Shown piece by piece: positions 15,437-61,376 of a stretch of 64,000 nt of DNA; within the stretch, counting starts at the first letter, position 1, and every line of letters starts with the position of its first letter. The stretch covers positions 381,985-445,984 of the forward strand of contig NW_005434637.1 of assembly GCF_000315625.1 (NCBI RefSeq), read 5' to 3'. The notes beneath the pieces are model-generated. The model was not told where the DNA came from. It ran no database searches and saw only the letters and a list, made by a program, of their open reading frames with translations. Source of the DNA: Guillardia theta CCMP2712 (lineage: Eukaryota > Protista > Cryptophyta). The position numbers and the translations under genes are program-made.

Positions 15437-15570
15437 GGTATTGAGAGGGGAGAAGAACACCATAATTCCTGAATGAAAAGTTATATTGTTTGACATGGAC
15501 ATTTGCATATTAAGGTTACCCTTACTCCTCCTCCTCCTCCTCCTCCTCGCTCTTTCTCTTCCTCCTCCTC

Positions 15571-39244: not shown

Positions 39245-39973
39245 ATGAGCACAATATTCATCCTCCCAAAGAGCATGTTTTGCAAGCAATCTGTCTATCT
39301 CACCGTATTGCTGTGCTTGAACAACGTTGGAGGGCTGAACTTGTACAACCTCCCATTCGAGGCTGCAGACCAGTCTGCCCTACGAGTTGGACCACAGCCC
39401 GGCAGCAAGCCAGGAGGGCTGCGGTTACGAGGAGGAAGAGACTTGCTGCGGATCGAAAGGCTAGAGAATGACATGTACAGGATGGGCAAGCACGTCTTCA
39501 ACTCTCCCGCAGACGCCTACCGGACTGCTCAGGAGCCCTACTTCGTCAAGGCCCCGGGCTCCATCTTGAATCCAGCCCATTGGTTCACTTTCTTGCGCTA
39601 CCTGCTCGTCGGAGATCCTCAGAGGACCGTGGGGATGAGAAGAGTGAACACTGATTCACACTCGGGCCCTCTGGTCATGATCGACGGGGCTGACGACCTG
39701 GCGACTGCCCTGCAAGGTTCCGGCCTCCCACAGCAAGTTCAGTTTGCACTCCAGGCATTCTTGCTCTACCCCATCGTCCTTCCCATAGTGGAGCTCGGCT
39801 TCAAGGGGGCAGCAGATGATAGGGAGGAGAATCAGGCAGAGGCCAAGGACGCGAGAGCTGACGTGGAGCTGTTGAAGTCTTCCCTCCTGGCTATGCTGCT
39901 CCCTAACGAGAGTTTGATGGGAGAGAGCGACGCTTGGGAGGCCATGCAGAGGCTCAAAAGCAGTGCCGATGTA

Positions 39974-40007
<34 letters not shown>

Positions 40008-42201
40008 TGGAGATGCCAAAGTTGATGGGGACGAAGGCAGCTGGAGCACTGGCAGGGACGAGAGTCAACCAGTCCAAGGAGGTTCCAAGGAGCAAGGGAG
40101 AGAGGCCCACGGAGGAAGGCAGTAGCACGCTGTCGAAGCAGTACCTCAAGTGGAGCCTCAGGAACAGATGGCAGAGGAGGAGAAACCAGATGTTGGTCGG
40201 TGAGCACTTCCAGGATGAGCAGTTCGTCGAGGACGCTATCACAGTCCTCTCGTTCCTGATGCACCGGACGAGCCTGGATGCTCCACTGCAAGGGAAGGGG
40301 AGGGAGGAGGAGCTGAGCATGAGGGAGAAGGACAAGGAAGGGGCAGCAACGGCGCGTGTGCAGGCACACGATTGGCCCAGTGAGAGCGTCTTGGAGCAGA
40401 TGGTTCGCCTGCTGGCAGCGCTTGACGGGGTGGTGACGAAAGCATGGGAGCCGAGGGTGCGGGCGGACCTGACGAGCCCTCTCGCCATGTTCGCGACAGC
40501 GACTATGTGGTGGTCGATGCTGTGTCATGAGCTCGCAGCCTTCAGCGGCTTCATCCAGCAGCTCACGCAGACCTCCGCCCTCTCCTCCTTCGCCACCGCT
40601 TGCAAGACAGTGGCCAACTGGATGCTGCCGGTTGGGCAGCTGGGGATGTCGCTGTACGGGCTGTCGGTGGGGATCAACGGGGTGCGGGAGGCCTTCGAGC
40701 TCGCTGAGAAGAAGGAGATGGTGCGTGAGTCGAAGATGCTGGACAAGTTCAGCGAGACGAAGACGATCCTCCTCCGCCAGCTGTCTCACCTGGCCCAGTC
40801 CACCTTCCTGTCCGAGATCCTTGCCGGCTTCCTGCTCTTCTTCGGGCAGCTGATGATGACAATCGGCTGCCAGGACATCGCGGGGAAGATCTACTTCCTT
40901 CTCTTCGGGATCTCCTCCTCGGCCGTCGCCATCGTCATGAAGACCTACATCGATCTAGACACCGAGAAGAAGTTCGGCTACGACGAGGACATTCTCTCTG
41001 TCCCGCAGATCCTCATCAACCATGTCCCCAAGACCATCGCTGTCTGCTCCCACCAGTCTGACTTCCGTGCCATCGCCCTGGTGCAGGCGAAGAGAGAGCG
41101 GCTCCTGTGGAAGCTCGCCTGGATGAAGGCCCTCACGCTCATCGATGGGAAGGAGGAGGAGGATACAAGGAGGAGGGTGGCGGCAGGGGACCTCTACAAG
41201 TTCGACTACGACCTGGAGCTGAGAGAATTTCTCCACATGATCCTCACTCACGCTGACTCCTGCTCGATCTTTACGAGCCTCAAGCGGCTGCACGCGGACT
41301 CGAAGCACAAGAGTCGCAGGCAGCAGGACCCTCTCCTCGTTGCCCTGAGCTGCATCACCGCGATCAAGGCTCTTCAAGAGCTGCCGAACCCGTCAGGATG
41401 CATCGACGAGGATGAGTGCATTGCCGGAGAGAGCGAGGAAGGATTCTACGTCAAGGTCGTCGCAGACAAGCTCGAGCAGAACGTCATGCTGTGGATGACT
41501 TACCCTCGCTCCGAGATCCTGAACCTGGTGAAGCCTCCTCTGTTTTCTCTGCCCTCTCTCCCCCTTCTCCGATCTTCTTTTCTTCCCTTCTTCGTCTACA
41601 TTCTTCTTTGATTCGTTCCTTCTGCACTGACCCTCTCTCCGTTCGTCCTCGCCCCTCCTCCCTCTATCGCTTGATTTGTCTCGTCTCACTCCTCCTCCAG
41701 GTCCTGATGGGCATGGAAGATGAGAAACTCATCGACGATGTCCACTGCCTCGTTCTCAAGGACATCCTGGTGGACCAGCGGCTGCCGCAAGCAAGCTTTC
41801 CTCTCTGTGGGAGGAGAAGTGCGGGGAGCCGAGGAGAGGTAGAGGAGGACGAACTGCTCTCTTCCTTTCTAGACGTGGTCCCTTGCTACGAGGAGCGATC
41901 GATCAAGGTCCCGGGATGGCAGATCTACAAGTACCGGCACGGCAAGCACGCGTACAAGTTCCTGCAGGCAGAATTCATGCTCAGCCTCTACCGCTGCGAG
42001 ATCGACTCGCTGCCTCGTCCGCGCCACCATGCTGTGAAGCTCCTGGCCTCCTCCCTAGAGCGCGGCATCTTGCGGACCATCACGTGGGGTTGGAAGCAAA
42101 GAATCCGGTCCAAGATCGGCTGCTACAACGAGGTGCTGCTGGAGATGCTCCGCGAGCTCGACCTGAGGAAGAAACTCTTGTCGCCGGCTCTTGGTACATG
42201 A
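39245..42201 (+). CDS. Large orphan multi-TM protein with signal peptide and LRLRGG (one intron ~41529-41700)
   Basis: 788-aa ORF plus an in-frame second exon; hydrophobic N-terminus YLTVLLCLNNVGG; several TM-like segments. Confidence 0.7.
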
Positions 42202-42353
42202 GGACAGGGGAGGGGAGGCGAAGGAAAAGGTGGGAGGAGGAAGAGGAGGAGGAGGAGGAGGAGGAGGAGGAGGAGGGGGAGGAGGAGATCCAAACCCAGT
42301 CATCTATATGTATCTAAGTGTATTGAAACAAACATCTTCCACTCTGCAGGATG

Positions 42354-43640
42354 TCACGACACGAACTTTTCCGCTGAGACAGGGTAGGCTTCCATCGACC
42401 CCTCTTTCTTCTTCTCTCCGCCATCGCTGGAGCTTTTCACGTTCACCTCCTCGGGGATCGCGCTGATGTCCGAGATCGTCTCCAGCTCGCTGTCATACGT
42501 GGAGGAGGCTCCTCTCGTACCTCCTCCTCCTCCTCCTCCTTCCTTCGCATCGATCGGAAGGACGGTCAGGCGGCTACCTCGCTTCCTCTGAGAGTTGAGC
42601 TTCCTGCACAGAAGTGCGGCCTCGTCGTACCTGCAGACCATCTCCTCGCTGTCCTGCACGAAGATGTCCTTGCCCGTCCTGTAGTCTTTGATCTGACGGA
42701 ACAGCGCGTACGGGCGAGGGACAGCGTCTTTAGGACACTTGTGCGCGCTCTCGCAGTCGACATACGATCCTATCTCCACCAGCCGCTTGTCCAGGTCCTC
42801 CTCCTCCTCCTCCTCCTCGTTCACATCCTTGACTTCCCCACCCTTGGCGATGTAGGAAGTCTGCAGCGATACCATCTGACTGAAAGTGTCCATGAGGTGG
42901 CAGACCGCCCTCTCGCCCTCGCTCGTCTTCTCCAGGTACTGCAGCGAGTACGCGACAGATTCCAACGTAGATAAGCAGAACTGGTGAGGCTCCTTCCTAA
43001 ACTTGTATCCGCTCCTCCCTGCCCGTGCAAACTGCACGCGGGTGACGTCTCCCCTCTCCACGGCCCTTCGGATGCATTCCTCGCGGATCACACGCCCTGC
43101 CTGCCGCCATGTTCCATCGACTACAATAAGGGTCCGCTCACTGTCTGAGTCATCCAGCTGTAGAGTCTCGATGTCCACAGCCCCTGGCCCTGGATACAGC
43201 AGGAGAGTTTTCTTATCGCTCAGGGCAGCTTCAAGAGCGGGATTCCCGTCTAGGGTGCCATGGATTATGCCTTTCTTGTTTTGGATCGGACATGCTGCAG
43301 TATCACTGGCATCGTTGACCTTCTGCAAGAGCGAAGAATCGTCCTGGGAGCTAGAGGAATCGTACGAGAGTGGAGATCCTTCATCGGAGCCGACTTTCCT
43401 CCCCCTCCTTCCTCTCGTTGTCGAGGCCTCTTTCGCACCATTCCCTCTCGCTACAACTACCTGCATGTTATCAAGCACGAGCTCCATGAGAGGGACGGTG
43501 CCGATGATCTTCTTGTGACATTCGCAGGGATGTTGAACAACGAGAATCTTCGTCTTCAGCATGATCTTCTCTGCGGGAAGCGAGCTGCATACGCAAACGG
43601 TCTCCGGCCTCCCGCACCTCTGGCATACTGCCCTGCCCAT
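42354..43640 (-). CDS. DTWD2: DTW-domain tRNA-uridine aminocarboxypropyltransferase (DTWD2/TapT-like), single exon
   Basis: CQRCGRPETVCVC, ILVVQHPCE, LLYPG, LIVVDGTWRQA, RKEP...LSTLESVA. Confidence 0.9.
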   Translation of the reverse strand: MGRAVCQRCGRPETVCVCSSLPAEKIMLKTKILVVQHPCECHKKIIGTVPLMELVLDNMQVVVARGNGAKEASTTRGRRGRKVGSDEGSPLSYDSSSSQDDSSLLQKVNDASDTAACPIQNKKGIIHGTLDGNPALEAALSDKKTLLLYPGPGAVDIETLQLDDSDSERTLIVVDGTWRQAGRVIREECIRRAVERGDVTRVQFARAGRSGYKFRKEPHQFCLSTLESVAYSLQYLEKTSEGERAVCHLMDTFSQMVSLQTSYIAKGGEVKDVNEEEEEEEDLDKRLVEIGSYVDCESAHKCPKDAVPRPYALFRQIKDYRTGKDIFVQDSEEMVCRYDEAALLCRKLNSQRKRGSRLTVLPIDAKEGGGGGGGTRGASSTYDSELETISDISAIPEEVNVKSSSDGGEKKKEGSMEAYPVSAEKFVS

Positions 43641-44142
43641 GGCGCCTTCCGGCACCTCTGACCCCACCCTTTTCCCGTTTTGGAGAGGAACCAACCTGGT
43701 AGGGTGATCAACATGCAATTTCAGTCCGGAAATCGAAATTTTGCATAGATTTGATGAAATTGAAGCGCTGAAAAGTTGAAAAATAATTACAATATTTGAG
43801 TAGTCAACACTTATTTCAGATGGCCATGAAGAAAGTAGAAGACCCTCATACGGCATTGACCGTTATGACGGTTATCATGGTAGCAATCCTGCCTTTTTTT
43901 TTCCTCCCCACGAGCAAAGAGAAGCGACAAACTCTCAAAACTTTAGAGAAAACTTTCCAACTCGAAAAGTTTCCTTCAAACTTTATTAGTCATTTTAGTC
44001 AGTAATCAGTAGGAATCAAGTTCACCTCAGTGACTTTCAAGACATTATCAAAAGGCAGCGAAATTGAGTTAATCGACTACTAGTTTACTCTCTGGGCACC
44101 TGTATCCTCGAGGATACATCTGTTTCCGAGAGACCGACGAGA

Positions 44143-45874
44143 ATGTCGGTGCGGGTAGCGTCCCATGCAGGATCCTGGTATGCGGGAAGAGGCGACGAGC
44201 TGAAGAAGCAGCTGGACAGGTCGGAGCCTCTCGTGTCTATCTCGCTCTTCCATGCTCCTCCCTTGACTCTCGCACTTGTCCTGCGCTGTCCTTGCCTTGA
44301 GCAGTCTCGCAACTGTAGTTTGCGCTGCAGTTCCGCCATGGGATCGCGATACTGGAACTTCTTGATAGGATCTCACCGAATTGCTGAGCGATTTATGACA
44401 TGGATGTCGTTGTGCTCGTGGTCGTCTCTTTGTCCCGCTCTTCTGTCCCTCTTGCTTGTCCATCGCTCTCGTTTGTTCCTTGAGCGAGCATTCCATCGAC
44501 AGCATCGTGTCGACATGACTTGATCTCACGTGCGATCCACAGATGGCTGCAAGATGTGAAGAAGTCTGATGAGCTGCAGCCTTCCTGCGGCTTGATCGCT
44601 CCGCATGCCGGTTACTCCTATTCGGGCCCAACTGCTGCGTACGCTTATCGGTACATGGACCCCTCGAGGTAGGACGGGAGCGACGAGGCCTGCACGCTCT
44701 GACCTTGAGCACCAACAGAATTAAGCGAATATTCGTACTCGGACCGTCTCATCACTACTACCTTACTGGTTGCACGCCTGATCCTGTCCTCGTCAGTTTT
44801 GACACGCCTGTTGTCCGGCAGGGTGCGCGCTGTCAAAGCACAGCGCTTACGCTACCCCACTCGGGAACCTGGAGATTGACACAGATGTTGTCAAGGTGAG
44901 GAGAAGATGTAGGTTGGGGCGAAGGGGGGAGGAGGGCAACGGGAAGGGCAAGAGCTGAAAGATCTGCTTTGTGGAGGTGCTCTGACTTGCCACCTTTGTT
45001 CAGGAGCTTCACAGCTCAGGACTCTTCGAGTACATGTCGGAGGAAGTGGACGAAGACGAACACTCGCTGGAGATGCAGATGCCGTACATCTACAAGGTGA
45101 TGGAACAGGCGTCCAAGAGCTACAAGATTGTTCCTGTCCTGGTTGGGAACCTCTCACCCAAGAAAGAGGACGTGTACGGGTCGCTCTTCTCCCGGTGAGC
45201 TCTGAGATCCCTTGCTCGACAAGTCTCACTCGTGTTTGAAGCTACTTGAACGATCCTTCAACCTTCTTCGTGATCTCCTCGGACTTCTGCCACTGGGGCT
45301 CTCGGTTTCGATACACTTATTATGACCCTTCCTTCGGAGAAATTTACCAGGTGAACGACACGGAGGTGTGAGTTTTCCTTCGCCGTGATGTGTCAAGGCA
45401 GTCAATCGAGGCGCTAGACAGGCAGGGCATGCAGGAGATCGAATCGCTCTCTCCCGAAAACTTCCAGAACTACCAGGCTAAGGTCTGTCAAGCAAGGCAC
45501 ATGGTGGCTCAATCGTGTTTCCTGACTCTTGTCGTGTCAGTTCAACAACACAATCTGCGGAAGGCACCCGATAGCTGTCTTGCTGAATGCTTTGAAAGCC
45601 TCCAGCGCTGCTTCTCAGGCCTCCGTCCAGTCTCTGTGCGTGACCTGGTTGCTTCTCAACGCTCTCCTCCTGACTCGGCGCGCGCAGCTACAAGATTCAA
45701 TTTGTTCGCTACGCTCAGTCTTCCCCTTGTCGCTGTCAGGTGGTCACATTTGTCCCCCTCTTGTCTTCCCTTGTTCTTATCAGCGTCCGTCCTCGTCTCC
45801 AACACTCACTGCACGACGTTCAGGCTGATTCCTCCGTCTCTTACGCTTCAGCTGTCGTCAAGACAGCTGGCTGA
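44143..45874 (+). CDS. MEMO1: MEMO1 family protein (multi-exon)
   Basis: [69 protein letters not shown]. Confidence 0.94.
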
Positions 45875-46006
45875 CTACAGGCAGCAGAACATGGCTTTAA
45901 GTACAACAATAGAATTGATTTACAACAGAAGGAATCTCCTTTTCCTCATCTCCTCTTTCCTCCTTCACCCATCCATTCACCCTCCTCTCCCCTCCTCACC
46001 CACACC

Positions 46007-48891
46007 CTAGAACCCTGCCAGCTCTCTGTAGATCCTCTCTGTGTCCTGTGCGATTCTGTCCCAGTTGAACCTTTTCTGTGCCTTTTGCCTCCCCCTGCCA
46101 TGCTCGTCATAACAAGCTCCTCCTCTCCCCCCACCCACCTCAGGCCCATCTGCCTTGCGTTCTCAAAGTTGGAGAAGATCTCGCAGATCCCCCATGAGAT
46201 GCTGCCGGCCAGTCAGCGGGTCGTCGAGTCGAAGGGCATCGACTTGCCTGTTCGCTGAAGGATGCACGTGATAACCATCCACTCCATGGTCGACAAACTC
46301 CCGAGGCCCTCCCGAGCTTGTGGCGACTACAGGCTTCCCCGACGCCCATGCCTGCTTTTGAATGAGCAATCCCTGCACCTCTCCCTCCTCCCTTCCTTCC
46401 TCCTCCCGCCTTGATCCTCCTTCTCCACCTGTCCCTCCTTTCCTTGTCCTCCCACTTTCTTGCTCCTTTTCTCTGGCTCACCTCTAAGACGACGATACCA
46501 AATGGCTCGTTACGCGATGGGATGCAGACGCAGTCTGTGCTCTTGAAGAGCTCGACGAGCGGCCGGCCTGACATGCTGCCGAGAAAGCGGACGGCATTTG
46601 ACACACCGAGCTCATTCACTCTGTCAAGGAGGACTGAGTTGAACGAAAAGCGGTAGGAGAGGAGGAGAAGAGTCGAGGGATCCAGTGCGTTCACTCACCT
46701 CCTCTCCAGGTCAGCCCGCATGTACCCATCCCCCACGATGGCAAACTTGACATCGGATCTCGTGTTGAGGACGAGAGGAACAGCTTCGACAAGCAAGTCA
46801 GGCCCTTTCTGCGTCGCCAGGCGACCAACGAAGAGAACAAGGGGATCCAGGGGCCCGATGTTGTAACGTGCCTGGACATGGGTGTTAGGGGGCAAGCTTC
46901 CTACTCCCTCCTTGTGTACCTTGACTGCTCCTGCATCGAACGTCGCTAGGTAAGGAGCGAGATGAATACCATTGTACACCATCCGCATCTTGTCCTCCGA
47001 CACGCGGAACTGTTGCTTCACCTCATCGCAGAGCACCCCAGACACCGATATCACACGATCTGCCACTTGCACCACCTCTTCCTCTATGCGACGGATACGC
47101 TCGGACTGCAAGAGCGTGTTAACAAGCAGGCACAACCTCCTCCCAATTCTCCTCACCTGCCCTCCATAGTTGACGTTGCCGCACCTCCCAAACTCCGTGC
47201 TGTGAATGGTGGCAACAGTGTTCCTCCCAATGTTCTTGCACTGCACGACGGCCTTCGCAGCGAGCCAGTCGTGCCCGTGGCAGATGTCGAAGGGAGCTCC
47301 TTGGAATTGCTCCGACTCTGTCAGGAACCAAACGAAGGAGTTGCACATGTTGCTGCACTCCGTGATGAAGTCTGGATCCTGCAGTGGAGGTCAGCAAGCA
47401 CTCGAGAACTGCCTCAGGCACTCACAAGTTGGATCGGAACTCGGTGAATGTGAACGCCGTCGATGATCTCGTAAGGCATCTGGCCATCTCCCGTCCTCGA
47501 GTACACTGAGAGTGAGAGTCAATGCCACGTCACACCGTCTGCTCCTCACTCACCGTGTACTTCATGCCCTCTGCGCTCTAAGCCAGCTGCCAGCTCAGTG
47601 ACATGCGGAGCTACCCCTCCGACCTGATAGGTTATCAATAAACTCAACTCTCTTCCTCCTCTCCTTCGCCTGACCGCAATAGTGTGCAAAGATTCCCAAG
47701 TCAAGAGGGCAATGCGGAGAGGTCTTCCACCATCCAGCGCCTTGCTTGCCACCCTTGAGAGTTTCTTTTCTCCCTTTTCTCCCTTTAATCTGAGAGCTCC
47801 AGTCAACCGCACCATCGTCTAAGAAATCACATCAAGCTGCATCTTTACCCTCACCTCACGACTTCGTTCGAAGACGCCTCCTCGTCAGCGATCTCTCCCT
47901 TCGGGAGACTACTCAACGAGATTTCAACCGAGCTGTTCACTGAATGCTGATCAAGCCGTCAAAAACACTGATCGGGCAGGAAAATCGACATCTACATTCG
48001 TCTGGGTGCTTCCTCCCCTCAACCTCAACGTAATCTTCTTGACGAAAACAGCATCGTAACCCTGCCGACAGCATTTGAGCCCACACTCAGGTTCATGCAC
48101 AAAAAAATCTGCCAACCTCTCTGGAGTAATCCACCCCGTTGATGGTGAACCCTCCTGCAATCACAATCAATGAATCCAGGGGGAGTCCAGCTGTACAAAC
48201 CCATCTTCCTGAAATCAGTGACGAGCTCAAAATCGTACACAGACAAGAATGCTGCGAGGCCAACAATCCCGTCCTTGTTGATGAGATCCTCCGGCAGCGG
48301 ATACATCGGTGGAAGCGGGATCGATCCCTTCCTCGGTAGGAATGGAGATTCAATCATCTGGGAAAATTTGATTCCATCGCCTCCGTATGATCCCCGCCAT
48401 CTCAAGTAGAGCTTGTCCACACTGTTCTTGTTGCTCTGCGTCTCGCCAACGGCCTCGATCCCATCCTTCCCGTACATAGGATTCGCGTCGTGCCGATTGA
48501 CCGACGTGAGGTCAGGGTTTGAGAACCGAGAGCATCTGTAAACTGGGTCGGAGGCCAGGTTTATCACCACCACTCTCCCGTCCTCTGTGTGGAAGGTGAA
48601 GGAAGTCGCCGCCCCCACATCCACCTGCTGCGGGGTGCAAGCAGGATTCAGCACCTTGGAGATCGCTGCGAGGCCAAAACAATGCGTGAATGGCGAAAGG
48701 AGGAAGGAGCTCCCCGTGCTGATGTATAGCGAGAACACCAGCAATGTGCACGCAGACTTTGGCGTCCTCCAACTTTGCCTCACACTCATCCGGCGATTTG
48801 AATGCTCGTCCTCAGTGCCAGATGGAAACTTTTTCCTCCGCCTGTTTGCACATGAATCAACATTCCTCGACGGGGTCGTTGATAGTTCCAT
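46007..48891 (-). CDS. GT4 glycosyltransferase with signal-like presequence and an extra N-terminal region
   Basis: LRIALLTWES...VGGVAPHVTELA, HGHDWL, TIHSTEFGR, LFVGRLATQKG, IPSRNEPFGIVVLEAW, FNWDRIA. Upstream exons (48891-47850) splice in frame to the GT domain; an alternative start lies at 48789. Confidence 0.85.
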
Positions 48892-50741
48892 TTCAAGCTT
48901 GTCGTGAAAGTACCTGAAACTTTGATTTAGACATTCAATTTTCAGCCAGCTTCCCTGCAAGAGAAGAGAGAGAAAAAACCAACCTTGTGTTGCGAATCAG
49001 TACAGTTGATATCTCAGTGTCTACTTTTCTTTTCTCTCATGCTCGCTGGCCGGTGGTGCAAACCCAGTTCACTTGTCGATCCACTGTTGAAACATATCCG
49101 ATCGACCTCACGACCAAGAAAACAGCAGAATAGGATTGTGTATCTCAATCCAGGAGAAAATGAATCAACCTGCTGATAAGATCCGTCAGACAAGGGTTAC
49201 ATGTAAGCTCTCCAAGGCAGAAAGTTGGCGTTTGACGGACAAGGAGAGGGAAGAATGGTCAGGAAGGGGACGAATGGAGGCGACAAGAAGCGGAGGAGAC
49301 AAAAGTCAGAGGTACAGGGGAACTGATGCGTTAGCAAGGAACCAAGGGCGAGGAGGAAGAGGATGGGAGCTACGAGGATAACGCTAGGAGTTGAGGATCC
49401 AGTGGAGGAGCGGGATGCATGCACAGGCTCCCCGCATCGTCGTGTTTACCCCCACCCCACTACCCCTGAATTTCACACCGCCGTTCCCACCCCAACGTTC
49501 TCACCACCCCTGCCCTCGGCACCCGGCCCCCAAACTACCCCTGAGTCATGCACCACAATTCTGTTTACCCTACCCTTCATACTGCAGTCAAATATGCACC
49601 CGTTGTTTGTCGGCTGCAGATGCCGTGAAGGGGTCCTATCTCCTGAGATCGGGTATGCCCGGGGGTGGATAGACCATGACCTAGAAGAATCGGAGGGGGT
49701 GGTATCAACTGGGGGTCAACACACCCAGAGGATTCGCCTCTTGATTTCAATTTGGTTTCGAGAACCCAGTTTTTCATGGGGGTTTAGAGGGGGTGATGGA
49801 GATTGGTAGGTACTCTCACCGGTACTACTCATAGTCAGTTTGAGGGGTCCTTGTTGAATTCTGGATAGTTTCCAGGAAATTCAATATCTGGGGAAAAACA
49901 GTTTTAGAGCGCACATATAAAGGGACCCCCGGTCATGACCTCATTTCTCACAGGAAAAACGTGGGGTAGAGGTTGAGGGTGGGTTATCGGGGTCCATTTG
50001 TACGCGTTCCCCCATCCGGTAGGATACATTTGTATACAAATCCTCACTTTTAATATTTTATGGAGGTGAATCGTTTTTAATAACTACTTTATAATATTTT
50101 GAAAAGGAAAGCCTCTGGTGTTTTGTACCTCAAAGTCATTCCCTTATCTTACTTTAAAAACTTATAAGATATCGTACGAGAAACAGCCCCCAGTATAAAA
50201 TAGATATAAAATTCGGGCCCGGCCCGGGGGCACTCGAACCGGAACACCACTCGGCAATGACGGTGGCAGCAGAGGCGGGCCCGGATGCACTTTGTTACTG
50301 ACGAGAAATGGGCACCTGCCGTCCCGCTTCGACCACCCCGGGTGGTTGAAACAGATCTAAAGTATGAGGTGGGGTAGGTGGTCCCAACAACCGGGTCATA
50401 AGATTCAAAAGGGTAGGAGGAAGAGGGGGTGATCAAGCGATTGTGGCTTGACGTTGTGGGAGGGGTAGGGTGGAAAGATGAAGTTGAGATGCACCTCACC
50501 CGTCCAAGACTTTAGTACCCCACCCATCATCATGTGGGCATGTGAGGGTTAATTAACCCCCTATGTTGTGTAGAGTACCCTTTTAGAACCTTGGGACCCC
50601 TACCCACTGTTGACTACCTACCCTTGTAGCTAAAGAGTCATCCCCATACCCCCTCTTTCTCCCACATTTCATCACCACCCCTGTGTTTCCATTGATGGGT
50701 ACCCCTCATCACCCTACCCATACCAAATCTCCCAAAGCGCC

Positions 50742-52509
50742 ATGCAGGAACTCAACCGGCTTGTGGGCGAGGAGAGGAGAAGGTTGGAGCATGTTTGATG
50801 TGTCACCCAAGTTTTTCCTCTCACAGATGCCTCATAATGGTTGCGAGAGCAAGCTCCCCTAGTCGCTGATCTCGAGTCCTTTCTTCCACCTGTCCTCCCC
50901 TGCTCGTGTAACCACTGCAAAGTTAGAGTTCTGTTCCTATTCCCTTGCGGCCATTGCGGTTGGTCCAGACCTGCACTTGCCTGCCTGCCCCAGCCCTTGA
51001 TTGTCTTGTCATGCATCAAGGTCACCTTCTGGCTCATCGTCCCTCCCCTTGATGTTGAAAAATGTTGGTTCACAGCGGCCCCTTGCAACACTTTGACCGC
51101 TTTCACAACGTCTCGCCTGATCTTGCCGTCATCAACATCTTTCATTGGTCAATTTGAGGCTCCTCACTCGATGATGCCAGTCAACATCCTGCGGTGCATC
51201 CGGAGGCCAGTTTGTTCGAAGGACTCGACAGGTTCGTTGCATCTTGCCCCCCAAGTTTCACAGTCTGAACTGTTGTTTAAAACTCCAGAGTGGGCGAAGC
51301 TTACGGGCTTGACCTCGATGATGAGTACAAGGTATGCCGCATCCAAGGGACACTTGTGTGCATGATCGGACCCCCCAGAGCGACTACTCCGACTACTCCA
51401 ACGGGCAACTGGATGATGATTTCGTTGACTATGACTCCGAAGGAGACGAGACCTTGGTTGTTTCCCGATCACCTTCTCTAGAGAAAGCACTGACCCAGCG
51501 CAGGAGAAGTATGGGATGGATGACCGTGACAATGGCATCATGGAGATCTCAGAGGTAGCATGGGGAGAGCCGGCGATTCGAACCGTGTTTGACTTGATGT
51601 GTCAGGACGAAATGGAGAAAGAATTGGACGAGCAAGGCTGCGATTGTGAAGGGTTGGACTCATGTCAATTGTGCTCGTCCGTCTTTGCTACAGATGTTCA
51701 TACACACTCCTCCTCGGAAGACGCATGCAGTCCTTCGAGGAAACCCTTATGGAATCCATGGAATCGGTTCTCAAATCGCCGCCCTTCCACCATTGACGGC
51801 AAAGTCATGATGCTGCAGGTCAGCCTGGTTTCTCATGGGTGTTGAGGCTCACATGCTTTCTTCCGCCTTCAGAAGTATGGGCCGCGTTTCGGCCTGGCAC
51901 GCTGGGGACACATTTTCTCGGGGCATTGGAATGTCAATAAGCGCAAGGGTCAGGCAAGCCATGCATCCTTGGAAGAACTTCCGCCAGGATTTCTCAAGTC
52001 GCAGAATCTCTTGCCTTGGAGGAGGTGAGCTCTGTGTCCTCTCGCACCAGTATGCTTACTTCTGTCATGACAGACTCAATCGATGGGCTTGGAGGGCTCG
52101 CAGAGTGAGGATGGTGGAGGAGCGACCCCAGAAGAGATACTTCTTCGGGTCCCTTGTATGTCCCTTGTCTTGTCAGACAGCAGCTGCTGAAAACTCTTGT
52201 CCACAAGGTCTGGGTCACGCTGTTCTTCGTCGCTCTGTTTTGGAGGTGATCGCCCAATGGTGGACGCTTGCAGCCTAACGGTGAGATGCTAGGCGACTGA
52301 GCTTGCACACAATTCTATGGGAGTGGCTGTTTGGATCCCATTTGTCCCATGTAGGGGGAGCCCGCTGTCAGCGATCGAAGATCGTATCTCCATGGTATGC
52401 TTGTAGTTTTGCTCCTTTGAACGCAGATTCACATGTTGTTCCCCTCAGGTACTATTGTGGTCCTCAGAATGGCCATGACTTCTCGAGAAGGTTTGTTGCT
52501 CATTTCTGA
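50742..52509 (+). CDS. Hypothetical multi-exon protein with a Cys/His RING-like fragment
   Basis: CSCNHC...LFPCGHCG and an acidic middle region. Exon structure is uncertain. Confidence 0.35.
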
Positions 52510-53565
52510 CTTCTTCTTACTTGACTCTCCTTGCTCGCAGACCTCTTGACGTGCTTGACACTATATGCGCACAACATGATTTCTGCATCGGTGAGTAATT
52601 TCGCGTGCTTCAGATGCGATAGGCAAATGTTGTTCATTTCCGTTGCAGAAAAGTCAGAATATTGGATTGAAGGGCGACGGAGAAAGTCTGTCTGACGAGA
52701 TAGGAAAGGTGGAAAACACTGAAGGGTTTGCAGGTTGTACCCCATGGGTGAAACGGATGAGGATGATTTCCTACGGTCTGCATACCGATTGCGCACCCTG
52801 AGCCGTCTAAACGTTTTCTTCAGGTGTGGGATTCCGATGCGTTCACACACGAATCCCAGCTATGGTTGTAGAATCACAGACTGCGACAGAGAGATGGTCG
52901 AGGTGCCCATGTGAACGTTTGATCCTCCCTTTCCTCATCGCTTTCTTGCAGAGCCTGTTGAATACCTTCCAATGTTCTGGTGATCAGTCGCTTCCGAAGG
53001 TCCAACTTCACAGGAAACTCGTTCTGCACCGCGCTGATAGATGCGGCAGAGCCCATGGTGCTACGACGAACGCTACGTCGGGAAAGCACACTGTACAGAG
53101 TGAGGCACTTTGAAGAGATGTAGCGACGAAACTGACTCCTGTCACATCAGATATCTCTGGACTTGGAAGATAGGGCTGTGGCCGGTCTGCAAAGCTGCAG
53201 GGAAGATAGCTACAGCATATCATTCATGGAAGATCAAAACAGCTTGCTCCATCATGAAGCAGCAGGTGACCTTGCCCTCTTGCTGTGAGCCTCGCTCGTT
53301 CTGACGGGGCTGAGCAGATTTTGGCTCCTCTGGATGACATAGACAACGCCCCCCCAAGGTGCTCCTTGCTCGCCATCAATCTGTGTGCGTCTTGGCAGCT
53401 CTGACCTGCTCTGCAGAGGATGGAGGATGGTCTCATCGCTCTTGACGTTGCTGGGCGGCACTCGGTCTGCCCAGCAGCTTCGCGGAGGTGTTGCATGGAA
53501 CTGCACGTGCCCATAACTTCCCATCCTTTCGGAACTTCTCCGTGCTTATCAACGTTTTCTGCCAT
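52500..53565 (-). CDS. Hypothetical multi-exon protein
   Basis: A chain of short minus-strand ORFs starting next to a GC island; no domain recognised. Confidence 0.3.
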
Positions 53566-54206
53566 GGGACGGCTCTGAACTTGAATCCCTGGCCTCAGTC
53601 CGGGTGGCAACTGACGGGACCGCCGGTCCGCCCAGAGGTTCAGTTGAAGCAAATTCTGCCAGCCAGCCACGTCCGATCGGGCCGATCATTCCACGCAGGG
53701 GCCGGGCGGGTGCGAGTGTGACTCGTGAGAGACTCTTGTAAATCACAAGTAAATATCATGTAAATACGCAACCGACAGTGTGGCGGCAGCGAGCCTGCCC
53801 CGGGCCATCCGACCCGGCGTACAGCCTGGTGTACTGGGCCGGCCATCCGATGATGATCGCCGAGTTCGCCGCCCGGGCCCAACCGTACGGTCCGGTGACT
53901 GAGTGTCCGGTGAGCCTCCCCGCCGCCCGGCCGGCCCCGGGCGGCGGCCTGGCAAGTCACTGAGTCTCACGGCCACCCGGTCCGAGTCAGCCGGACTCCC
54001 GGCCGGGCGGCGATGGGCCCGGATAAGCAAGTTTTCGAACTTTTGAGTATATTTTTCAAAATTTCAAATTCTCGTGATCAGCCACCTACGTGGTACACAA
54101 CCTCCGTGAAGGCGAAATGCGGGCCGTGCAGAAAGGGGCGGACGGGGGAGGAAGGAGGAGGAGAAGGAGGAGGAGGAGGAGGAGGAGGAGGAGTAGGAGG
54201 GAGAGA

Positions 54207-55198
54207 ATGACGAAAGTTGATGATGATCATGTAGAGGACTTTGATTATGACGAGACAATCACTTTGCGGTGCTGAGATCGTTTCTCCTGTCAGGATGCCT
54301 CCGTTCGACTTGCGGGCAGCCCAGTATCGTATCCTGGGCCCGATCGATGGAAGGGCCGCAGGCGAGTCTGAGCAACATAAGCGTCTCCCTGTGTCGGCTT
54401 GTTTGACGAGTGATTCATGGCAGATGGTAACGGATCATCGGATTGCTCCTTGCCGAACAGACAAGTGAGAAAACAATCTTGCGTTGCCTGAGAAGCCCTC
54501 CCCTCTCTCGCTGTCTCCTTCCCTGCCCACTGCTTGTCTTCATTCCTCTCTTCTTTCTGTCAACGATCGCTCCTGAGTCGCATGTAAAAGGCTCCGCCAA
54601 GCATGAAATTTCCTCATCCTCTCGGCAGCCATCCTTTCATTGCGTCCAGGAGCCAGAACACTGTTGACCTGTCGTTGAGCAAGCAGCAGTCAGGTAGAAG
54701 ACAAGCAAGTGGGTGTGAGTTCTGCTCTGACCGACATCTTTGCAGCTCAAAGTCACAGAGGAAGCGCCTCATCTGGTCCTTCTCCTCACTCCGACGCGAG
54801 CAGGTTCGCGCTCCAGCTCATGGTCGTAACTCTGATCGTCGCATGCGGCAGATACGGGCAGGTAACTCTTGGGCCATCTACCTACAGCTTCACGAGCAGG
54901 CAGCGAATGTCTTACTACAACCCCCCGCAGAGCATCCTTGCGTGTATCCGCAGGTTCGATCTGCCTCGAGGGCAGGGGGGAGGAGACGAGAGGAAGGGAA
55001 GGAGAGAAGGAGGAGGAAGGAGGGTGAAGGCGGGGGGGATGGTGGGGTGAAGGAGGAAGTGAAAAGAGGGCAAGGGCTCAGGGAAGGGTATGATACATTT
55101 TCACAGCGATGAGGGAGCATGGAACTTTGCTTGGCTGACGGCTGGACTGTCAGTGGTCGGCGTTATTTTGTATTATTTTAGCTTGGGGTGGGTGCGAT
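54207..55198 (+). CDS. Hypothetical small multi-exon protein
   Basis: Short exons flanked by plausible GT/AG sites; no homology recognised. Confidence 0.25.
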
Positions 55199-55362
55199 AA
55201 TCGTGGAATCGAGGAATGAAGTATTTTTTTGATGAAGATAGAAGCTAGGGTTCCTGTTTCACCCTTCAAGTTGTCTCTCCTTCCCCTCGTCTTCTCTCTC
55301 TTTCCCCTCGTCTCTCCTTCCCCTTGTCTTCCCTCTCCTTCTGAGCCCATAAGGACATGTCC

Positions 55363-55541
55363 TTATAGGTTCAATCCGCTCTTGATAGCCATGCGATGCT
55401 CGGCCTTGTTGTTGGAGCTCAGCAGCCTCTTCTTCATGTAGGACTTGAGCCAGGAGTTGATGCGAAGCTTGTAGGTCACGAGAACCTCTGCATGCTAAAG
55501 TTACCATCCTCCTCCTGCTCCACCTCTTGGTCCTCTTTCTC

Positions 55542-55634
<93 letters not shown>

Positions 55635-58399
55635 ATATCACCACCCTCATCTTCATCGCTGCTGCTGCTGCCGCCACCACCACCACCACCACCATCGTTA
55701 TCAACAAACAACTCGGTCGCATTTATCATCATCATCATCATCATCATAACTTCAATCGTCATCAACACCACCACCACGATCTTTGACGTAACGTCATCCT
55801 CTTCAACTTCGTTCACCTTTCCCGTTCGCATCTTTATTGTCCATCACAGATACCTGCCAACATGAGTGACCACCGAGGGGCGCGTGCCAGCAGAGCACTA
55901 CATCTGCTGCTGTCAAGTTGTTGTTGTTCGGGATGAACGCGTTCGCTCCCATCTCGCAGAGGCGTTTGACCTGCCCTCAGAATCAGGAAGTGGAAATCTA
56001 CTCTTGAATCTTTTCTCCTCCTCTCTCCTCTCCTCCTCTCCTCCTCTCCTCCTGTTCTCCTCGTCCTTCTTCTCACCATTTCAAATTTCCCAGCCGCTGC
56101 TGCTGCATGTAGCGGCGTGTTTCCCTCTAAGTTCTTGGCGTCCAGTTTCATCTTACCCTGGCTCAGCAGAACCTCGACGCATTTCCTGCACTTGAGTTGG
56201 TAGAAGCCAGCAGCGGGAAGCGAAGTGAGGTGAGCAGGGACGCATGGGGAAAGTCCGTTCGACCGTCATGCAGATGGAGAGGCATACGAGCGCAGGGGAG
56301 GGAGCGGAGGTTGAGGACAGGGGAGAAGGGAGGAGGAGGAAAAGAACAGCAGAGAAGGGACTGGAGGTGAGCTCACGGATGTCCCAGCCTGGCAGCGAGA
56401 TGCAGCAGTGGACCTGGAAGAGTGAAATGACACCATGAGCGCCAGCGGCAGTCCACCTGACCTTCACGGTTGCTCGCTTTGAATCCTGCCTGGCAGAGGG
56501 TCGCAAGAGAAAGGTGGCAGTCCCTCTGGACGGCGAAGCGGAGGGCTGAGGATGTTAAGATCAGTTGTGACTTGATTGACGGCACACGAGGAATGGACCT
56601 GAATCAGCATATCCCCCAGTCTGTCTGAAGTTATTGGTTTTCTCACACAATTTTATCATGTTCTTCGAGCCTCCAATCAGCAGAGAAATTCAGAGGAAAC
56701 GAAGCAGACCTTGAGCGGAATCTTCTCCTGCTTTTCCACGGTGTAGAGGAGGTACTCGTTCATCTGCAAGCTCTGCCCCGGGGTGAGCGAAGGGAATTGC
56801 TTCTGCGAAATGTCAAGAGCAGATCGTATGCACGTGGATTTTCAGACCGATATGTTTTGAATTCGCAGATTGCGACGCTCGATATCCTTGATGCTCGCCA
56901 GACCGCAGGCATCAAACCAAGGTGATATGTATTGTCGTCCACCTGACAAAGCTCTGATGGGGAGGAGGAGTAGGAGGAGGAGGAGGAGGAGGAGGAGAAG
57001 GGGGAGGAGGTGGCGGTGGCGGTGGAGGATGGAAGAGAGTAGGAGAAGGAGGCACTTAGATAACCTTTGGTGCAAACGATGCTGTCGCACAGGCAAGCGA
57101 CCGCTGTGAAGTTCTTTTTGACCTTCAGAAAAACGAGGATCAATCAACGAAATCACATTGTGACGATGATAATATCCCAACCTTTCGAACTTGAGAAGGA
57201 GAAAATCCAAGATCAACCAGGAGAGTTTTGCACTTCTGTGATGTCAAAGGGGACGCTGGACGACATCCTCTTCAATCGTTCACCGACACAACAAGTTTGA
57301 CATACCGAGCTCCAATACACTGCCATTGCTCGTCTCATACCTCCTGTAAACCTTCATTGGTGGAGGTGCCTTCATGTGAGGTTATGTCAGCTTTACAGGA
57401 TATTGGCTCCGTCATGATAGACAAACCGATCTCGACCTTCGGAAGTAAACCCTGTTGGTGGACTTCAACTTGCTCTGAGGACCACAATCAGCTAGTTCAG
57501 CACAGGTACAGCCATGGATTACCGATCCAAAGTATCCCGCTTCTGTCGGAAGTTTAGTCTTGTCTCCTGCATGTTTCTTGAATGTCTTGGCCATCTTGCG
57601 GGAGAGTGAAACATTGAGGATGGGCGTCGCTTGATCCTCTGCCAACACAAGAACGTCGTACTGTCCACATCGTCATGGTACCAACAAGTCGCGTCAAAGT
57701 CACGAACCATGTCCTCATCGTCTCCTCCACTGGACATATCTGCCTTCCATGACTTATCAGGTTGATCTGCTGAGAGTTCAGACATGCTCTAGAGGCAAGC
57801 AGATGCGTACTGGGTTGACTTGTCGTTTTCGTGGAACCAGTCGCAGCATTCGTGGACGCCATTTGTTGCTCGTTGAATCTCTTCTGTTTCCTCTCCTGCA
57901 TCTTCATCATCTTGAGGATCTTCATCCTTCTCTTCAGCCCTTTCTGCCTCCTCGCCAGCTTCTTGCGAAGCTTCTCCTCCCTCTTCATTATGATCATCTG
58001 ATTGGCGGGGTGGAGTGAAGAGCGCCGGTCGATCCCTTCATACTCCTGCTGCAACGTCGGGTGCTCGAGCGGATCATCATTGAGCCACCGCATCACTTGC
58101 CAGTCCTTCTCCATCTTGGTCGGGACCTTCCTCCCCTCGCCATTGTCAACTTGGAAGTCAGAGCGATCGGTCAGCGGCTTGATGCGTTTCTCCATGGCCG
58201 ATGGGAACATCTTCCCCTTGAACTTCTTCCCTCCGCCGCGCAAGTTCAGGCGCACCATGGTCATGCGCAGTCTTGTCATTGTCGATACGGCGAGTTCCGA
58301 GTTGAACCCTGCTGCTTCCTCCATGGTGGAGGAGAACAGGGACAGACACACAAGCGCAAGTGCCACGTGCCCTGCCCCCCCGAAGTTCCAGAACCCCAT
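55363..58399 (-). CDS. Ankyrin-repeat protein with signal peptide and LNLRGG presequence
   Basis: Signal HVALALVCLSLFSS; ankyrin motif DAKNLEGNTPLHAAAAAGKFEM|VKRLCEMGAN. Confidence 0.7.
55543..55633 (+). repeat. (CAT)n microsatellite, intronic
   Basis: About 30 CAT units. Confidence 0.95.
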
Positions 58400-58896
58400 G
58401 GTGAGCACCGTCTGACTCGACGAGCTAGAGGATGCATGCCATGGTGGAGTGGATGCTTCGGTCTCCCCTGAGTACGCTAAGAGGTGAAGTCAAGGATGGC
58501 CTTATGGAGGAGAAGAATTGCTCAGAAGCATACTCGCTTTCAACTCCTCTCTCCTCTCTCCTCTCGAGCAGTCCGCCCTCTCCCGCTCTCTCCCTGTCCT
58601 GCTCTTTCACCATGTCATCCTGCTCCCTCATCCTCTCGGTCTCCTCCCAGTTATCAGCTGTTCATCCCTCCACCGCGGTCATGCCCGCCTGCATGCCCGC
58701 ACCGGACTGCGCACCGGACGCATCGCCCGGTTACGAGGGGGGATGCGGTAAACAGCGCCCCTCATCCCCTCTCTGCAAGCGGCTGTTCGCGCTCATGGTT
58801 CGCGCTATGGCGGAAAGCATGGATCAAGAGGAGGCAGCAGCGCCGCGAGCGATGCAGCCCTCGCCGCAAGATCCACTCATCTGCCATGCTCCAACC

Positions 58897-60024
58897 ATGC
58901 CGGCAGCTCGCAGGCGAATCACCATAGCCGTCTCTTCACTCCTAGCATGCGCGCTCGTTGCCTGCCTTTTGATCTCCCGGCAAGCCAAAACGTCCCTCCT
59001 ATCCGTGATCTTTCCGGGGAGCATCCTAGCGCGCGTACAACTCAGAGACTTGACGGCGATCAGGAACGCAGGCAGCGATGCCCATAACACTGTAGAGTGG
59101 GGGAGAGACTCTGCCATGAGAAAGGCAGCAGAGACGGACGTCGGAGTCCCAGGGTGGGAGCCAGGCCCCGACTACTACTCTACAAGGCGGTGGGACAACA
59201 TGGACGTCATGCCTTCGCACAAGTCACGATTCTTCGAACCGTACACTGGCAAGACAGGCTGCCCATCGTGTGACAACTCTGCATACTCCGGTCCTTACGT
59301 GATCTCAGTCTCAGATCGGTGTGACCACACCGCGGCGGTTTCTAACATCAAGATGCTGTTGAAGCCTCAGGACCACCTCGAGAAGATCCCCAACATCGCA
59401 GCCTCAAAGTACGAGGACTACACCTGGATCGAAAACCAGCTAGAGCTCACGACGCTGCTGTACTCTAAGGTCATCTACGTGGTCCCACCTTGCTTCTTTC
59501 CCACCATTTCCCGCCATGGATTGAACATCCTGGATCGATCAATATACACCAGAGGCAACAATATTCTGTTGCTCGGAGGATACAGCGGAGCCGATTTCCT
59601 CTCGAGGTTCCTTGCTGGCGATGATGGATATGGCTATGTCAGAACTGGAAACATAGACGAGTACTCCACGGAGAAGAGCAGGATGGACGTTGTGTGGAGT
59701 GAAGGACCGTTCTACATGCAGAACGATGCTACTACGACAGAGTTCTTCTATGGTCCGCGCTTGTTGGAAGGGTTGGGCGATGCAGGTTGTGCGTGCGGCA
59801 CTGTGGCGATTCCTGCCAGTGAGTTGCCGGAAAACACAGTCTTCTACTATATGGATCAGAACGACAATGCTGTGATCTTTGAGATCCCGGCAGGACAAGG
59901 TCGTATCCTATTCATTGGATATGACTACGGTGCGATCGTTCCTCATTGGTCTGACATCTTGCTTCTTGCTGAAAGAGAACTTGAGCTGCCGGAGCGCAGC
60001 GTCTCTGTAGTCACAGACTCATGA
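58897..60024 (+). CDS. Orphan intronless type-II membrane protein (ORF open from 58432)
   Basis: Signal-anchor RRRITIAVSSLLACALVACLLIS followed by a globular-looking domain (GNNILLLGG...GQGRILFIGYDY). Confidence 0.65.
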   Translation: MPAARRRITIAVSSLLACALVACLLISRQAKTSLLSVIFPGSILARVQLRDLTAIRNAGSDAHNTVEWGRDSAMRKAAETDVGVPGWEPGPDYYSTRRWDNMDVMPSHKSRFFEPYTGKTGCPSCDNSAYSGPYVISVSDRCDHTAAVSNIKMLLKPQDHLEKIPNIAASKYEDYTWIENQLELTTLLYSKVIYVVPPCFFPTISRHGLNILDRSIYTRGNNILLLGGYSGADFLSRFLAGDDGYGYVRTGNIDEYSTEKSRMDVVWSEGPFYMQNDATTTEFFYGPRLLEGLGDAGCACGTVAIPASELPENTVFYYMDQNDNAVIFEIPAGQGRILFIGYDYGAIVPHWSDILLLAERELELPERSVSVVTDS

Positions 60025-60241
60025 TGAACTCATGCCGTTACTATCCGATCTTTTAACTTTGCCGTATCTTCTCCATCAGTAAACATGAAAGTCATGCCAG
60101 CCTGTGACTATGATCGGACGGCGCGGCCGGCGGCCGGCGCCGGGCGGCACTGCCGCAGTCACCCGCCGGCGCAGCCTCCCGGGCTGGCGCCAGCACTGCT
60201 GGCACGTTCCGACGCCAGGCACTGCAAGCCGGCGGCGACCC

Positions 60242-60319
60242 GTGACGGAATACAAGTTCAAGGGTTAGACTTGTACTAGTCCAAAGTCACGCAGATATCA
60301 CATCGACCTTAGTTGTAAC
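60242..60319 (+). repeat. Dispersed repeat; second copy at 63865-63968
   Basis: Shared colinear blocks GTGACGGA, ACAAGTT, GTTAGAC, TTGTACT, CCAAAGTCACG, CAGATATCACAT, CGACCTTAGTTGTAAC. Confidence 0.85.
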
Positions 60320-60803
60320 CAGAATTGAGGAGCACATGAGAGATAGACTGTATGCTAGGATGTGAAACCCAAGCATCCAGACATGAGAGGACCTTACTGC
60401 GGCAAGACGGCTCAGCTAGGACTTGAAGCCCCCTCTTCGTCCCACACTGCACGTGGCTCTACGGCACGGAGCTCTGACCTGCATGCTCTACGCAGACTAC
60501 CTTGCTATAGTGGACAACGTAAGGAGGGTGTCCGGCGAAATAGGATGACTGCTATAGGTATCGGCCATCATGTGGGAGGGGCTGGGGTTTCATAGAAGAG
60601 GAAGATGGGCATGCGAAGTGAGTGCGGCCGGCCCCGGGGCCCCGCCGCCTGGTGCCCGCCAGGGTGCCGCTGTGCCCGGGCCGGCCCGGCCGCCGGGCCC
60701 GGCCAGCCCGGCCCGCCGGCCGCGGCCTGCCCGCCGGCCGGCTGGGCGTACTGTTTCACCATCATTCGTGGTACTCTTCCCATTCGTTCAGGTGGCCGCC
60801 GCC

Positions 60804-61376
60804 ATGGTTGCTGTGAATAGCCCATGGCTCACCCTGCTCGTCCTGCCAGCGATGATGAGAGGCTTCACTGAAGCGACAGCGCCTGCACTTGTGTCTCGAA
60901 CAAGCGCAGCTGTGCCATCTGCACATTTCTCGTCCTCTCCTATGAAGAACTTTGCAACCTCAATGCATCTCAGGGGAGGAGGGGAGCGGTACAGCCTCGG
61001 GCTGCGCGACTCAATAATGATCGCGCATTCATTCACTGGGAAGGAATTCGGTCCCGCACAGAACATGCATGGGGCGACGTATACTGTGGACGTGGAATTT
61101 CATGTGGAGAGCCTTGCTCCACGGTTGAATTGGGTTTTGGACATTGGGGAGGGAATGACGATGTTAAAGAAAGTTCTTGGGGAATACAACTTCAAAAATC
61201 TCAACGAGCTCTTTCCCGGAGAAAACACTACAACAGAATTCATGTGCAAGAAAATATTTGAGGGTCTTTGCGTGGAGTTGAAGGGCAAGTTCAAGGGGTC
61301 CATAACCGTGAAGTTGTGGGAGAGTCACAGTGCATGGGCTTCTTACACCAACGACATTGGTGCTGATGGCTGTTAA
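60804..61376 (+). CDS. 6-pyruvoyl-tetrahydropterin synthase / QueD-like T-fold protein with presequence ending in LRGG; intronless
   Basis: RDSIMIAHSF.G.EFGPAQNMHGATYTVDV, NLNE, NTTTEF, LWESHSAWASY. Confidence 0.88.
   Translation: MVAVNSPWLTLLVLPAMMRGFTEATAPALVSRTSAAVPSAHFSSSPMKNFATSMHLRGGGERYSLGLRDSIMIAHSFTGKEFGPAQNMHGATYTVDVEFHVESLAPRLNWVLDIGEGMTMLKKVLGEYNFKNLNELFPGENTTTEFMCKKIFEGLCVELKGKFKGSITVKLWESHSAWASYTNDIGADGC

Follow-up and report, generated by a model that had tools for sequence, protein, structure and literature searches.

A hexamer resembling the C-terminus of ubiquitin as the probable end of N-terminal leaders in a class of cryptophyte proteins

The stretch analysed here, called the window below, comprises 64,000 nucleotides of Guillardia theta CCMP2712 (positions 381985-445984 of scaffold JH993001.1, assembly GCA_000315625.1), and the nearest relatives of its proteins were found in Hanusia phi, Geminigera, Rhodomonas, and Hemiselmis. 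Letters 50804-64000 agree fully with the scaffold record. A first-pass annotation had pointed to four peptides in this window that equal or resemble LRLRGG, the sequence of ubiquitin residues 71-76, and all four were found in frame within real genes, two of them on the minus strand. The broader claim, that the motif is a recurrent element of unrelated signal-peptide proteins, was also borne out, as the hexamer is kept across cryptophyte genera and located at the junction between leader and mature protein. The genes are an orphan multi-pass membrane protein, a PTPS-like gene, an ankyrin-repeat gene, and a glycosyltransferase gene, to which a fifth case, in an immunophilin gene, was added from the flanking scaffold.

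The orphan multi-pass membrane protein is encoded by a single open reading frame (ORF) of 788 aa (39245..41611, plus strand), for which Pfam gave no match, and the methionine at 39275 (MFCKQSVYLTVLLCL...) is its likely start. The leader (39275..39418, plus strand) showed a hydrophobic core, SVYLTVLLCL, with a best 11-residue Kyte-Doolittle mean of 1.8-2.0, followed by a spacer of 32 residues. Immediately after it, the translation reads LRLRGG (39419..39436, plus strand), identical to ubiquitin residues 71-76 and located 49-59 residues into the 788-aa ORF. Orthologues of this protein (P0121-P0124, Hemiselmis tepida included) carry the motif as LRLRGG or PRMRGG, and as MRLRGGG in the case of Hemiselmis tepida. 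Identity between the orphan protein and these orthologues was 26-33% in the leader and 52-56% after the motif.

The PTPS-like (T-fold) gene (60804..61376, plus strand) consists of a single exon coding for 190 aa, and exactly this product is present in GCA_000315625.1 as a 190-aa NCBI model. Its translation contains MHLRGGG at residues 54-60 (60963..60983, plus strand), and Pfam PF01242 was matched at residues 68-183 (E 2e-18). Homology to the enzyme had been said to start within a few residues of the double glycine, and indeed only 2-4 residues separate it from the part that leaderless homologues have in common with the protein. Relatives of the protein presented SLRLRGG in Hanusia and Geminigera and GLRLRGG in Rhodomonas, whereas MRLRGG, LRLRGG, and IRLRGG were the forms seen in a dozen metagenomic and transcriptomic relatives. 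The layout is the same in all of these relatives, with a hydrophobic N-terminus, 18-35 unalignable residues, the hexamer, 0-4 further residues, and then the conserved core YSLGIRDSIMIAHS. When 108 PTPS-like proteins were placed on a tree, all 16 rows with RxRGG fell into one clade (SH-aLRT 96), which contains every named cryptophyte (Hanusia, Geminigera, and Rhodomonas among them).

The PTPS-like T-fold family at large (P0017-P0116) is a widespread secreted or lumenal family of the endoplasmic reticulum (ER) in algae. Two other of its clades have short extensions, ...LFRL[TSH]GGH and ...SIRGGH, that resemble the motif and branch elsewhere in the tree. Upstream of the Guillardia gene, the frame remains open for 78 codons further (60570-60803, plus strand), with an ATG start and a composition rich in Gly, Pro, Ala, and Arg. 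Since a start at 60804 is backed by Hanusia as well as by the NCBI model, this upstream extension is probably non-coding.

The ankyrin-repeat gene lies on the minus strand (55363..58399) and presents RLNLRGGG at 58252-58229, also on the minus strand, with the core LNLRGG (58249-58232) placed 28 residues past the hydrophobic core HVALALVCLSLF. Its exon 1 codes for the leader, the motif, and a region rich in Lys, Arg, and Glu. Hanusia phi has a protein of 251 aa (P0149) that aligns with the first ~230 residues of the gene product and carries an identical LNLRGGG, and the identity between the two is 41% before the motif vs 75% after it. The NCBI model of 586 aa shows Ank matches, which upholds the original ankyrin label for this gene; the label "not ankyrin", taken from the 251-aa Hanusia transcript, was dropped because of these domains. 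A poly-Asp run of ~35 residues in one frame and a poly-Met run in another were observed at 55260-55850 (minus strand), within or beside the ankyrin model.

The fourth gene, also on the minus strand (46007..48891), encodes a GT-B glycosyltransferase of the GT4/GT5-like type, 708 aa long and spread over 14 coding exons. LRLRGG occupies its residues 255-260 (48028-48011, minus strand), inside a 66-nt exon (48061-47996). The long upstream ORF is read in a different frame from the motif, and it is splicing that brings the motif into frame. According to a transcript contig of 3661 nt, the introns between 47672 and 48200 must add up to 215 nt, for which introns of 46+55+49+65 nt are the only consensus-like solution, following the pattern GTGAGT...CTGAC...CAG and giving a continuous 708-aa protein. 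Automatic enumeration of these introns was ambiguous (820 solutions), and they were settled by eye from the consensus at splice sites and branch points; the NCBI model agrees with the spliced model in both start and length (708 aa). The exons matched Glycos_transf_1, Glyco_transf_4, and Glyco_transf_5 in Pfam, and the motif sits, as first described, ahead of the glycosyltransferase domain, with a conserved orphan N-domain on one side and the catalytic domain on the other. The statement that all four motifs lie downstream of a hydrophobic signal has to be restricted in this respect: it holds for the three genes with short leaders, but not directly for the glycosyltransferase, where a conserved N-domain of 197 residues intervenes between the hydrophobic core and the motif.

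This intervening stretch contains 21 acidic residues, and the leader ahead of it is of the Phe type (GSS|FLLSPF). The N-domain is 75% identical to that of its one close relative (P0145), and no other relative was found among 1.84 billion representatives. Sequence searches of Pfam, Atlas, and PDB for its being a degenerate ubiquitin-like domain gave no match, and the AF2 model of the domain was unusable (pLDDT 32). A link of the gene to starch metabolism remained weak, the matches being only of the generic GT4 and glgA-like kinds. At 44800-46100, the 3661-nt contig also covers a pair of convergent genes whose 3' ends abut or overlap, one on the plus strand with GT..AG introns (44.9-45.8 kb) and the other the glycosyltransferase gene on the minus strand. 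Introns across 44800-49500 are numerous and very short (44-130 nt, most of them 44-58), of the GT..AG type, with a GTGAGT-like 5' site and a CTGAC or TTGAC branch ~10 nt ahead of the CAG; a single GC..AG intron was seen at 46202-46247 (minus strand).

As regards the abundance of the motif, the bare count of LRGG strings carries no meaning, since the raw six-frame total in the window (9) matches that expected by chance (8.6 in 60 order-2 Markov simulations). This agreement is what a mere coincidence of composition in a G+C-rich genome would produce, and yet we find such a coincidence scarcely credible for the hexamer itself. The exact LRLRGG appears twice in the window vs 0.1 in the simulations, none of the 60 reaching two, and for ~20 genes, the occurrence of three or more LRGG no further than 60 residues from a gene start has a Poisson P of ~6e-6. 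Chance is contradicted too by the orthologues, in which the motif is kept across five genera and three families while the flanking leader diverges. Three of the motifs are located 28-35 residues downstream of a signal-peptide-like core, exactly where the conserved protein starts, and neither the motif nor a relaxed form of it was detected behind a hydrophobic N-terminus in any other gene of the window. In addition, the codons and the flanking DNA differ among the four genes; thus, the four sites are not copies of one DNA element. Five further LRGG, at 34724-34735 (minus), 15563-15574 (minus), 53478 (plus), 58731 (plus), and 58374 (minus), were rejected as noise, as they belong to short non-coding frames with neither signal peptide nor gene context.

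A blind sample of 17 kb of scaffold adjoining the window, which brought the total scanned to 81 kb, revealed one more hexamer and with it the fifth case, MRLRGG, in the gene for a 606-aa FKBP_C+TPR immunophilin (L007:2007-4700, minus strand, ~13 kb to the right of the window end on JH993001.1). The NCBI model of this gene begins with MPQMRLRGG, three residues before the motif. Upstream of this start, however, the frame is open and encodes a signal-peptide-like core MMMLERHSSKRKVELLVLFLFHAISDIGIVW and a 55-residue spacer, in the same leader layout described above; to judge from this frame, the NCBI start is probably wrong and a targeting leader was missed. In the same 81 kb, three leaders of the stromal type were present, formed by a signal peptide, an aromatic residue, and a Ser/Thr-rich stretch, and the motif was found in none of the three. 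One of them is the ClpS gene (4898..5533, minus strand), used as negative control, whose Phe-type leader had been noted as free of the motif; in this leader, MVKSSCVLLGVLFIVCDVNG|FGFSP (VNG|FGFSP), the signal peptide is indeed followed by a Phe, and LRGG is absent. The same was observed in the leaders of coproporphyrinogen oxidase (CPOX; SSA|YVTSP) and of a gene of 347 aa (g347; GIA|FMIP).

A profile was built on 20 non-identical leaders from four families, resulting in the consensus [LMI]-R-[LM]-R-G-G. Arg at position -3 and Gly at positions -2 and -1 are invariant (20/20), Leu occupies position -4 in 19 leaders and Met in the remaining one, and position -5 is Arg in 17, Asn in two, and His in one. 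At position -6, Leu or Met was found in 18/20, and positions -7 and -8 are free. After the double glycine, position +1 was Gly in 13/20 and Pro in none. The leaders that bear the motif have a best 11-residue Kyte-Doolittle mean of 1.8-3.4 within the first ~40 residues, and their spacers, of 18-56 residues, contain 0-3 acidic residues (five in Hanusia P0149) and 1-9 Arg, with the glycosyltransferase as the exception. Identity between relatives was 22-41% before the motif vs 52-91% in the 120 residues after it. On the basis of these alignments, it is highly probable that [LMI]-R-[LM]-R-G-G is a conserved sequence closing, at the C-terminal side, one class of N-terminal leaders in cryptophytes with plastids, and a role of the motif in sorting or processing is very likely.

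In such a precursor, an ER signal peptide is followed by a fast-evolving, basic, and acid-poor spacer of ~18-56 residues, the ubiquitin-tail hexamer, and the mature protein. In the mechanism that we regard as the most likely, the signal peptide would bring the precursor into the ER around the complex plastid, from where the transit-peptide-like spacer would move it through SELMA, a translocon derived from the ER-associated degradation (ERAD) machinery, into the periplastid compartment, that is, the remnant of the red-algal cytosol with its nucleomorph. There, a cysteine protease of the kind that reads ubiquitin tails would cut after the Gly-Gly and free the mature protein. Regarding the destination, the ER signal peptides precede cargo of cytosolic type, namely a co-chaperone of the FKBP-TPR kind, ankyrin repeats, and a soluble GT-B enzyme of nucleotide sugars, which suit a cytosol-like space and not the ER lumen. 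The lack of the motif in the leaders of ClpS, CPOX, and g347, with F or Y at the end of the signal peptide, points the same way. As in a cryptophyte the space of this kind that is reached through the ER is the periplastid compartment, we infer that this is reasonably probable as the destination of the motif proteins.

With respect to the enzyme, the profile reproduces ubiquitin residues 71-76, including two glycines that fit a narrow channel, which argues for a ubiquitin-tail-reading protease cutting after the GG. The pattern of invariance (P4 L/M, P3 R, P2 G, P1 G, and P5 mostly R) is what such proteases read, and the two invariant glycines agree with the LXGG specificity of the narrow-channel USP, UCH, and PLpro enzymes. 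In the precursors of ubiquitin and ubiquitin-like (UBL) proteins, such as polyubiquitin, UBA52, RPS27A, and ISG15, deubiquitinases (DUBs) cut after LRLRGG, and the hexamers found here are identical or near-identical to theirs, with R-G-G invariant and Leu or Met at P4. The difference is that those precursors have a ubiquitin fold upstream of the cut, whereas the leaders have 18-56 variable residues, and no ubiquitin-family match was given by Pfam for any of the motif proteins. DUB-type cleavage after the GG is thus put forward tentatively, its prospects falling a little short of even. The reading as a whole, in which a leader boundary, SELMA import into the periplastid compartment, and a cut by a ubiquitin-tail-type protease go together, we regard as evenly poised between right and wrong. 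The more general proposal, that cryptophytes trim the leaders of nuclear-encoded proteins of the periplastid compartment and nucleomorph with a ubiquitin-tail-specific protease and that these leaders evolved a six-residue mimic of the ubiquitin C-terminus, may hold as well, although we are more inclined to doubt it than to accept it.

Several observations weigh against periplastid import followed by a ubiquitin-tail-type cut, and the first of them comes from the PTPS-like family. In most of its other algal homologues, the signal peptide leads straight into the mature domain; hence, the family would be secretory in those algae, and the cryptophyte extension could be a secretory propeptide. In keeping with this, the PTPS-like protein is no clear "cytosolic" cargo. 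The leaders would then be ordinary propeptides, cut in the ER, the Golgi, or the vacuole with no involvement of the plastid, and their likeness to the ubiquitin tail would be a convergence, an explanation to which the two other PTPS clades with similar short extensions (LFRL[TSH]GG and SIRGG) also lend themselves. Nevertheless, FKBP-TPR, ankyrin-repeat, and soluble GT-B proteins are not of lumenal types, and the motif fits no kexin/furin, S1P, or PEXEL site, which makes a secretory propeptide very improbable.

Among the points that weigh against periplastid import and a ubiquitin-tail-type cut are also some concerning the leaders themselves. The cleavage sites of the signal peptides are hand estimates by the -3/-1 rule, and by this rule the PTPS leaders of G. 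theta and Hanusia could have a Phe at +1. The hand-assigned +1 residues are non-aromatic in the orphan protein (L), the ankyrin gene (T/M), and the FKBP gene (S/N), ambiguous in the PTPS-like protein (F possible), and F in the glycosyltransferase. A second cryptophyte fragment (38 kb of a 227-kb metagenome contig) showed the motif only in its PTPS gene. Several leaders are without lysine, which matters if ubiquitination of the leader is needed here as in diatoms. Finally, the glycosyltransferase gene is atypical, with a Phe-type leader and a conserved domain of 197 residues before the motif; since a conserved domain precedes it, the motif there divides two conserved domains instead of ending a fast-evolving leader.

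A cut at this last position would part the two domains of the glycosyltransferase, a point in favour of the motif being left uncut and acting as a tag for sorting, retention, or recognition, read for example by a ubiquitin component of SELMA or of the periplastid compartment, and holding the cargo in that compartment rather than letting it cross the inner two membranes. The absence of the motif from the aromatic-type (stroma-bound) leaders and the lack, in some leaders, of any lysine to ubiquitinate would be consistent with such a tag. A precedent comes from Toxoplasma PUBL, a protein imported into a red complex plastid, in which an RGG at the junction of leader and mature part, preceding the Ubl domain, was explicitly put forward as a cleavage site for a DUB but is neither processed nor needed (PMC5487736), a result that also counts against cleavage of the cryptophyte leaders. 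Unlike the cases described here, PUBL is a single protein, and its mature part is a Ubl in its own right. On the other side, the sharp change in conservation at the motif and the start of homology 0-4 residues past the GG are what a cleavage site predicts, and known ubiquitin readers bind the hydrophobic patch of the fold and not the tail. An uncut tag is, in our opinion, quite improbable.

For a cut by a ubiquitin-tail-type protease, the main difficulty is the substrate, as efficient cutting by DUBs normally depends on the ubiquitin fold, a beta-grasp of ~70 residues for which the short leaders lack the length and vary too much in sequence. Short LXGG sites are nonetheless cut without the fold, as seen with coronavirus PLpro and with RLRGG-AMC substrates. 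PLpro, a protease of the USP fold, cleaves proteins other than ubiquitin at short LXGG sites, which means that the ubiquitin fold is not strictly required, although its substrate is a viral polyprotein and the cut has no targeting role. The second difficulty is the enzyme. The only named deubiquitinase of SELMA, the diatom ptDUP, was reported to be absent from Cryptophyta, for which its authors expect "an alternative enzyme" (PMC12412216). Each of the four cryptophyte nucleomorphs sequenced has a gene for a zinc-finger protein that contains a Ufm1-specific-peptidase (ZUFSP-like) domain and is described as a putative DUB with no assigned role (PMC6559170), and this nucleomorph protein, Gt2_270, is a candidate for the protease, though only a candidate.

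Both difficulties, the missing ptDUP and the short leaders without a ubiquitin fold, would disappear if the hexamer were a leader-removal site for an enzyme other than a DUB, either an M16 processing peptidase resembling those of mitochondria and of the plastid stroma ("Arg at -3", R-G-G|X) or a C39-like Gly-Gly peptidase. The position at the junction and the invariant R(-3) fit the R-3 rule of the mitochondrial processing peptidase (MPP), as this rule is commonly understood, and the double-glycine leaders of bacteriocins are cut after an invariant Gly-Gly by the C39 domain of ABC exporters, a papain-like cysteine peptidase. The latter, however, are bacterial, have no signal peptide, and follow another upstream consensus. 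The R-3 rule, for its part, leaves unexplained the invariant G-G and the residues at -4 (L/M), -5 (R), and -6 (L/M), which jointly amount to ubiquitin 71-76, and we know of no such motif in substrates of MPP or of the stromal processing peptidase. We therefore consider a non-DUB cutter fairly unlikely.

Among the described targeting signals, the closest in their overall build are the bipartite leaders of red complex plastids. Gould et al. (2006) are said to have characterised them as a signal peptide plus a transit peptide, with the ASAFAP or +1 Phe rule. The ER signal peptide and the variable, basic, and acid-poor spacer are shared with them, and the leaders in which an aromatic residue follows the signal peptide, as in ClpS and CPOX, behave as a separate class. 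In the bipartite leaders, however, the known conserved element is at the cleavage site of the signal peptide, whereas the motif reported here is at the far end, for which, to our knowledge, no conserved transit-peptide motif is on record. The closest working analogy is that of the PEXEL/TEXEL elements of Plasmodium and Toxoplasma, in which a short motif some tens of residues past the signal peptide is cut by a dedicated protease (plasmepsin V or ASP5) that licenses transport beyond the ER. These elements differ in sequence, protease class, compartment, and lineage, and as the PEXEL consensus (RxLxE/Q/D or RRL) is not contained in [LMI]R[LM]RGG, the likeness is functional only.

A cryptophyte matrix was built for ASAFind 2.0 (2025), and no such motif was reported with it (PMC12136025). 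An alga-related Rae1 was reported in cryptophytes without a detectable signal peptide, probably as a consequence of incomplete N-termini (PMC6411479). A search for a prior description of an LRGG-type leader motif, covering searchable full text and the supplements of cryptophyte papers, with subscription papers and figures outside its scope, gave none; provisionally, the motif can be taken as undescribed so far.

The biology of complex plastids has yet to settle which nuclear-encoded proteins reach the periplastid compartment and the nucleomorph and by what enzyme their leaders are removed. Current predictors use only the residue after the signal peptide, and a hexamer that can be scanned for at the end of the leader would sharpen the prediction of the cryptophyte proteome and help in the correction of gene starts, such as that of the NCBI FKBP model. 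If the likeness to the ubiquitin tail were functional, the removal of the leader would be mechanically tied to the ERAD-derived import machinery. Should a ubiquitin-tail protease be the enzyme, the ubiquitin system would for the first time be seen to process the presequence of an organelle, the peptidase long sought for periplastid leaders would be identified, and a one-line sequence rule would be available for the periplastid and nucleomorph proteome.

Elsewhere in the window, an ORF with an ion-transport domain (7600-8730, plus strand) and a 771-aa ORF for a polycystin-type cation channel (25262-27577, plus strand; PKD_channel and Polycystin_dom), both without the motif, were also present. 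Finally, the window includes an assembly gap of 631 N at 14806-15436, and the rejected LRGG at 15563-15574 (minus strand) corresponds to G-rich noise adjoining this gap.

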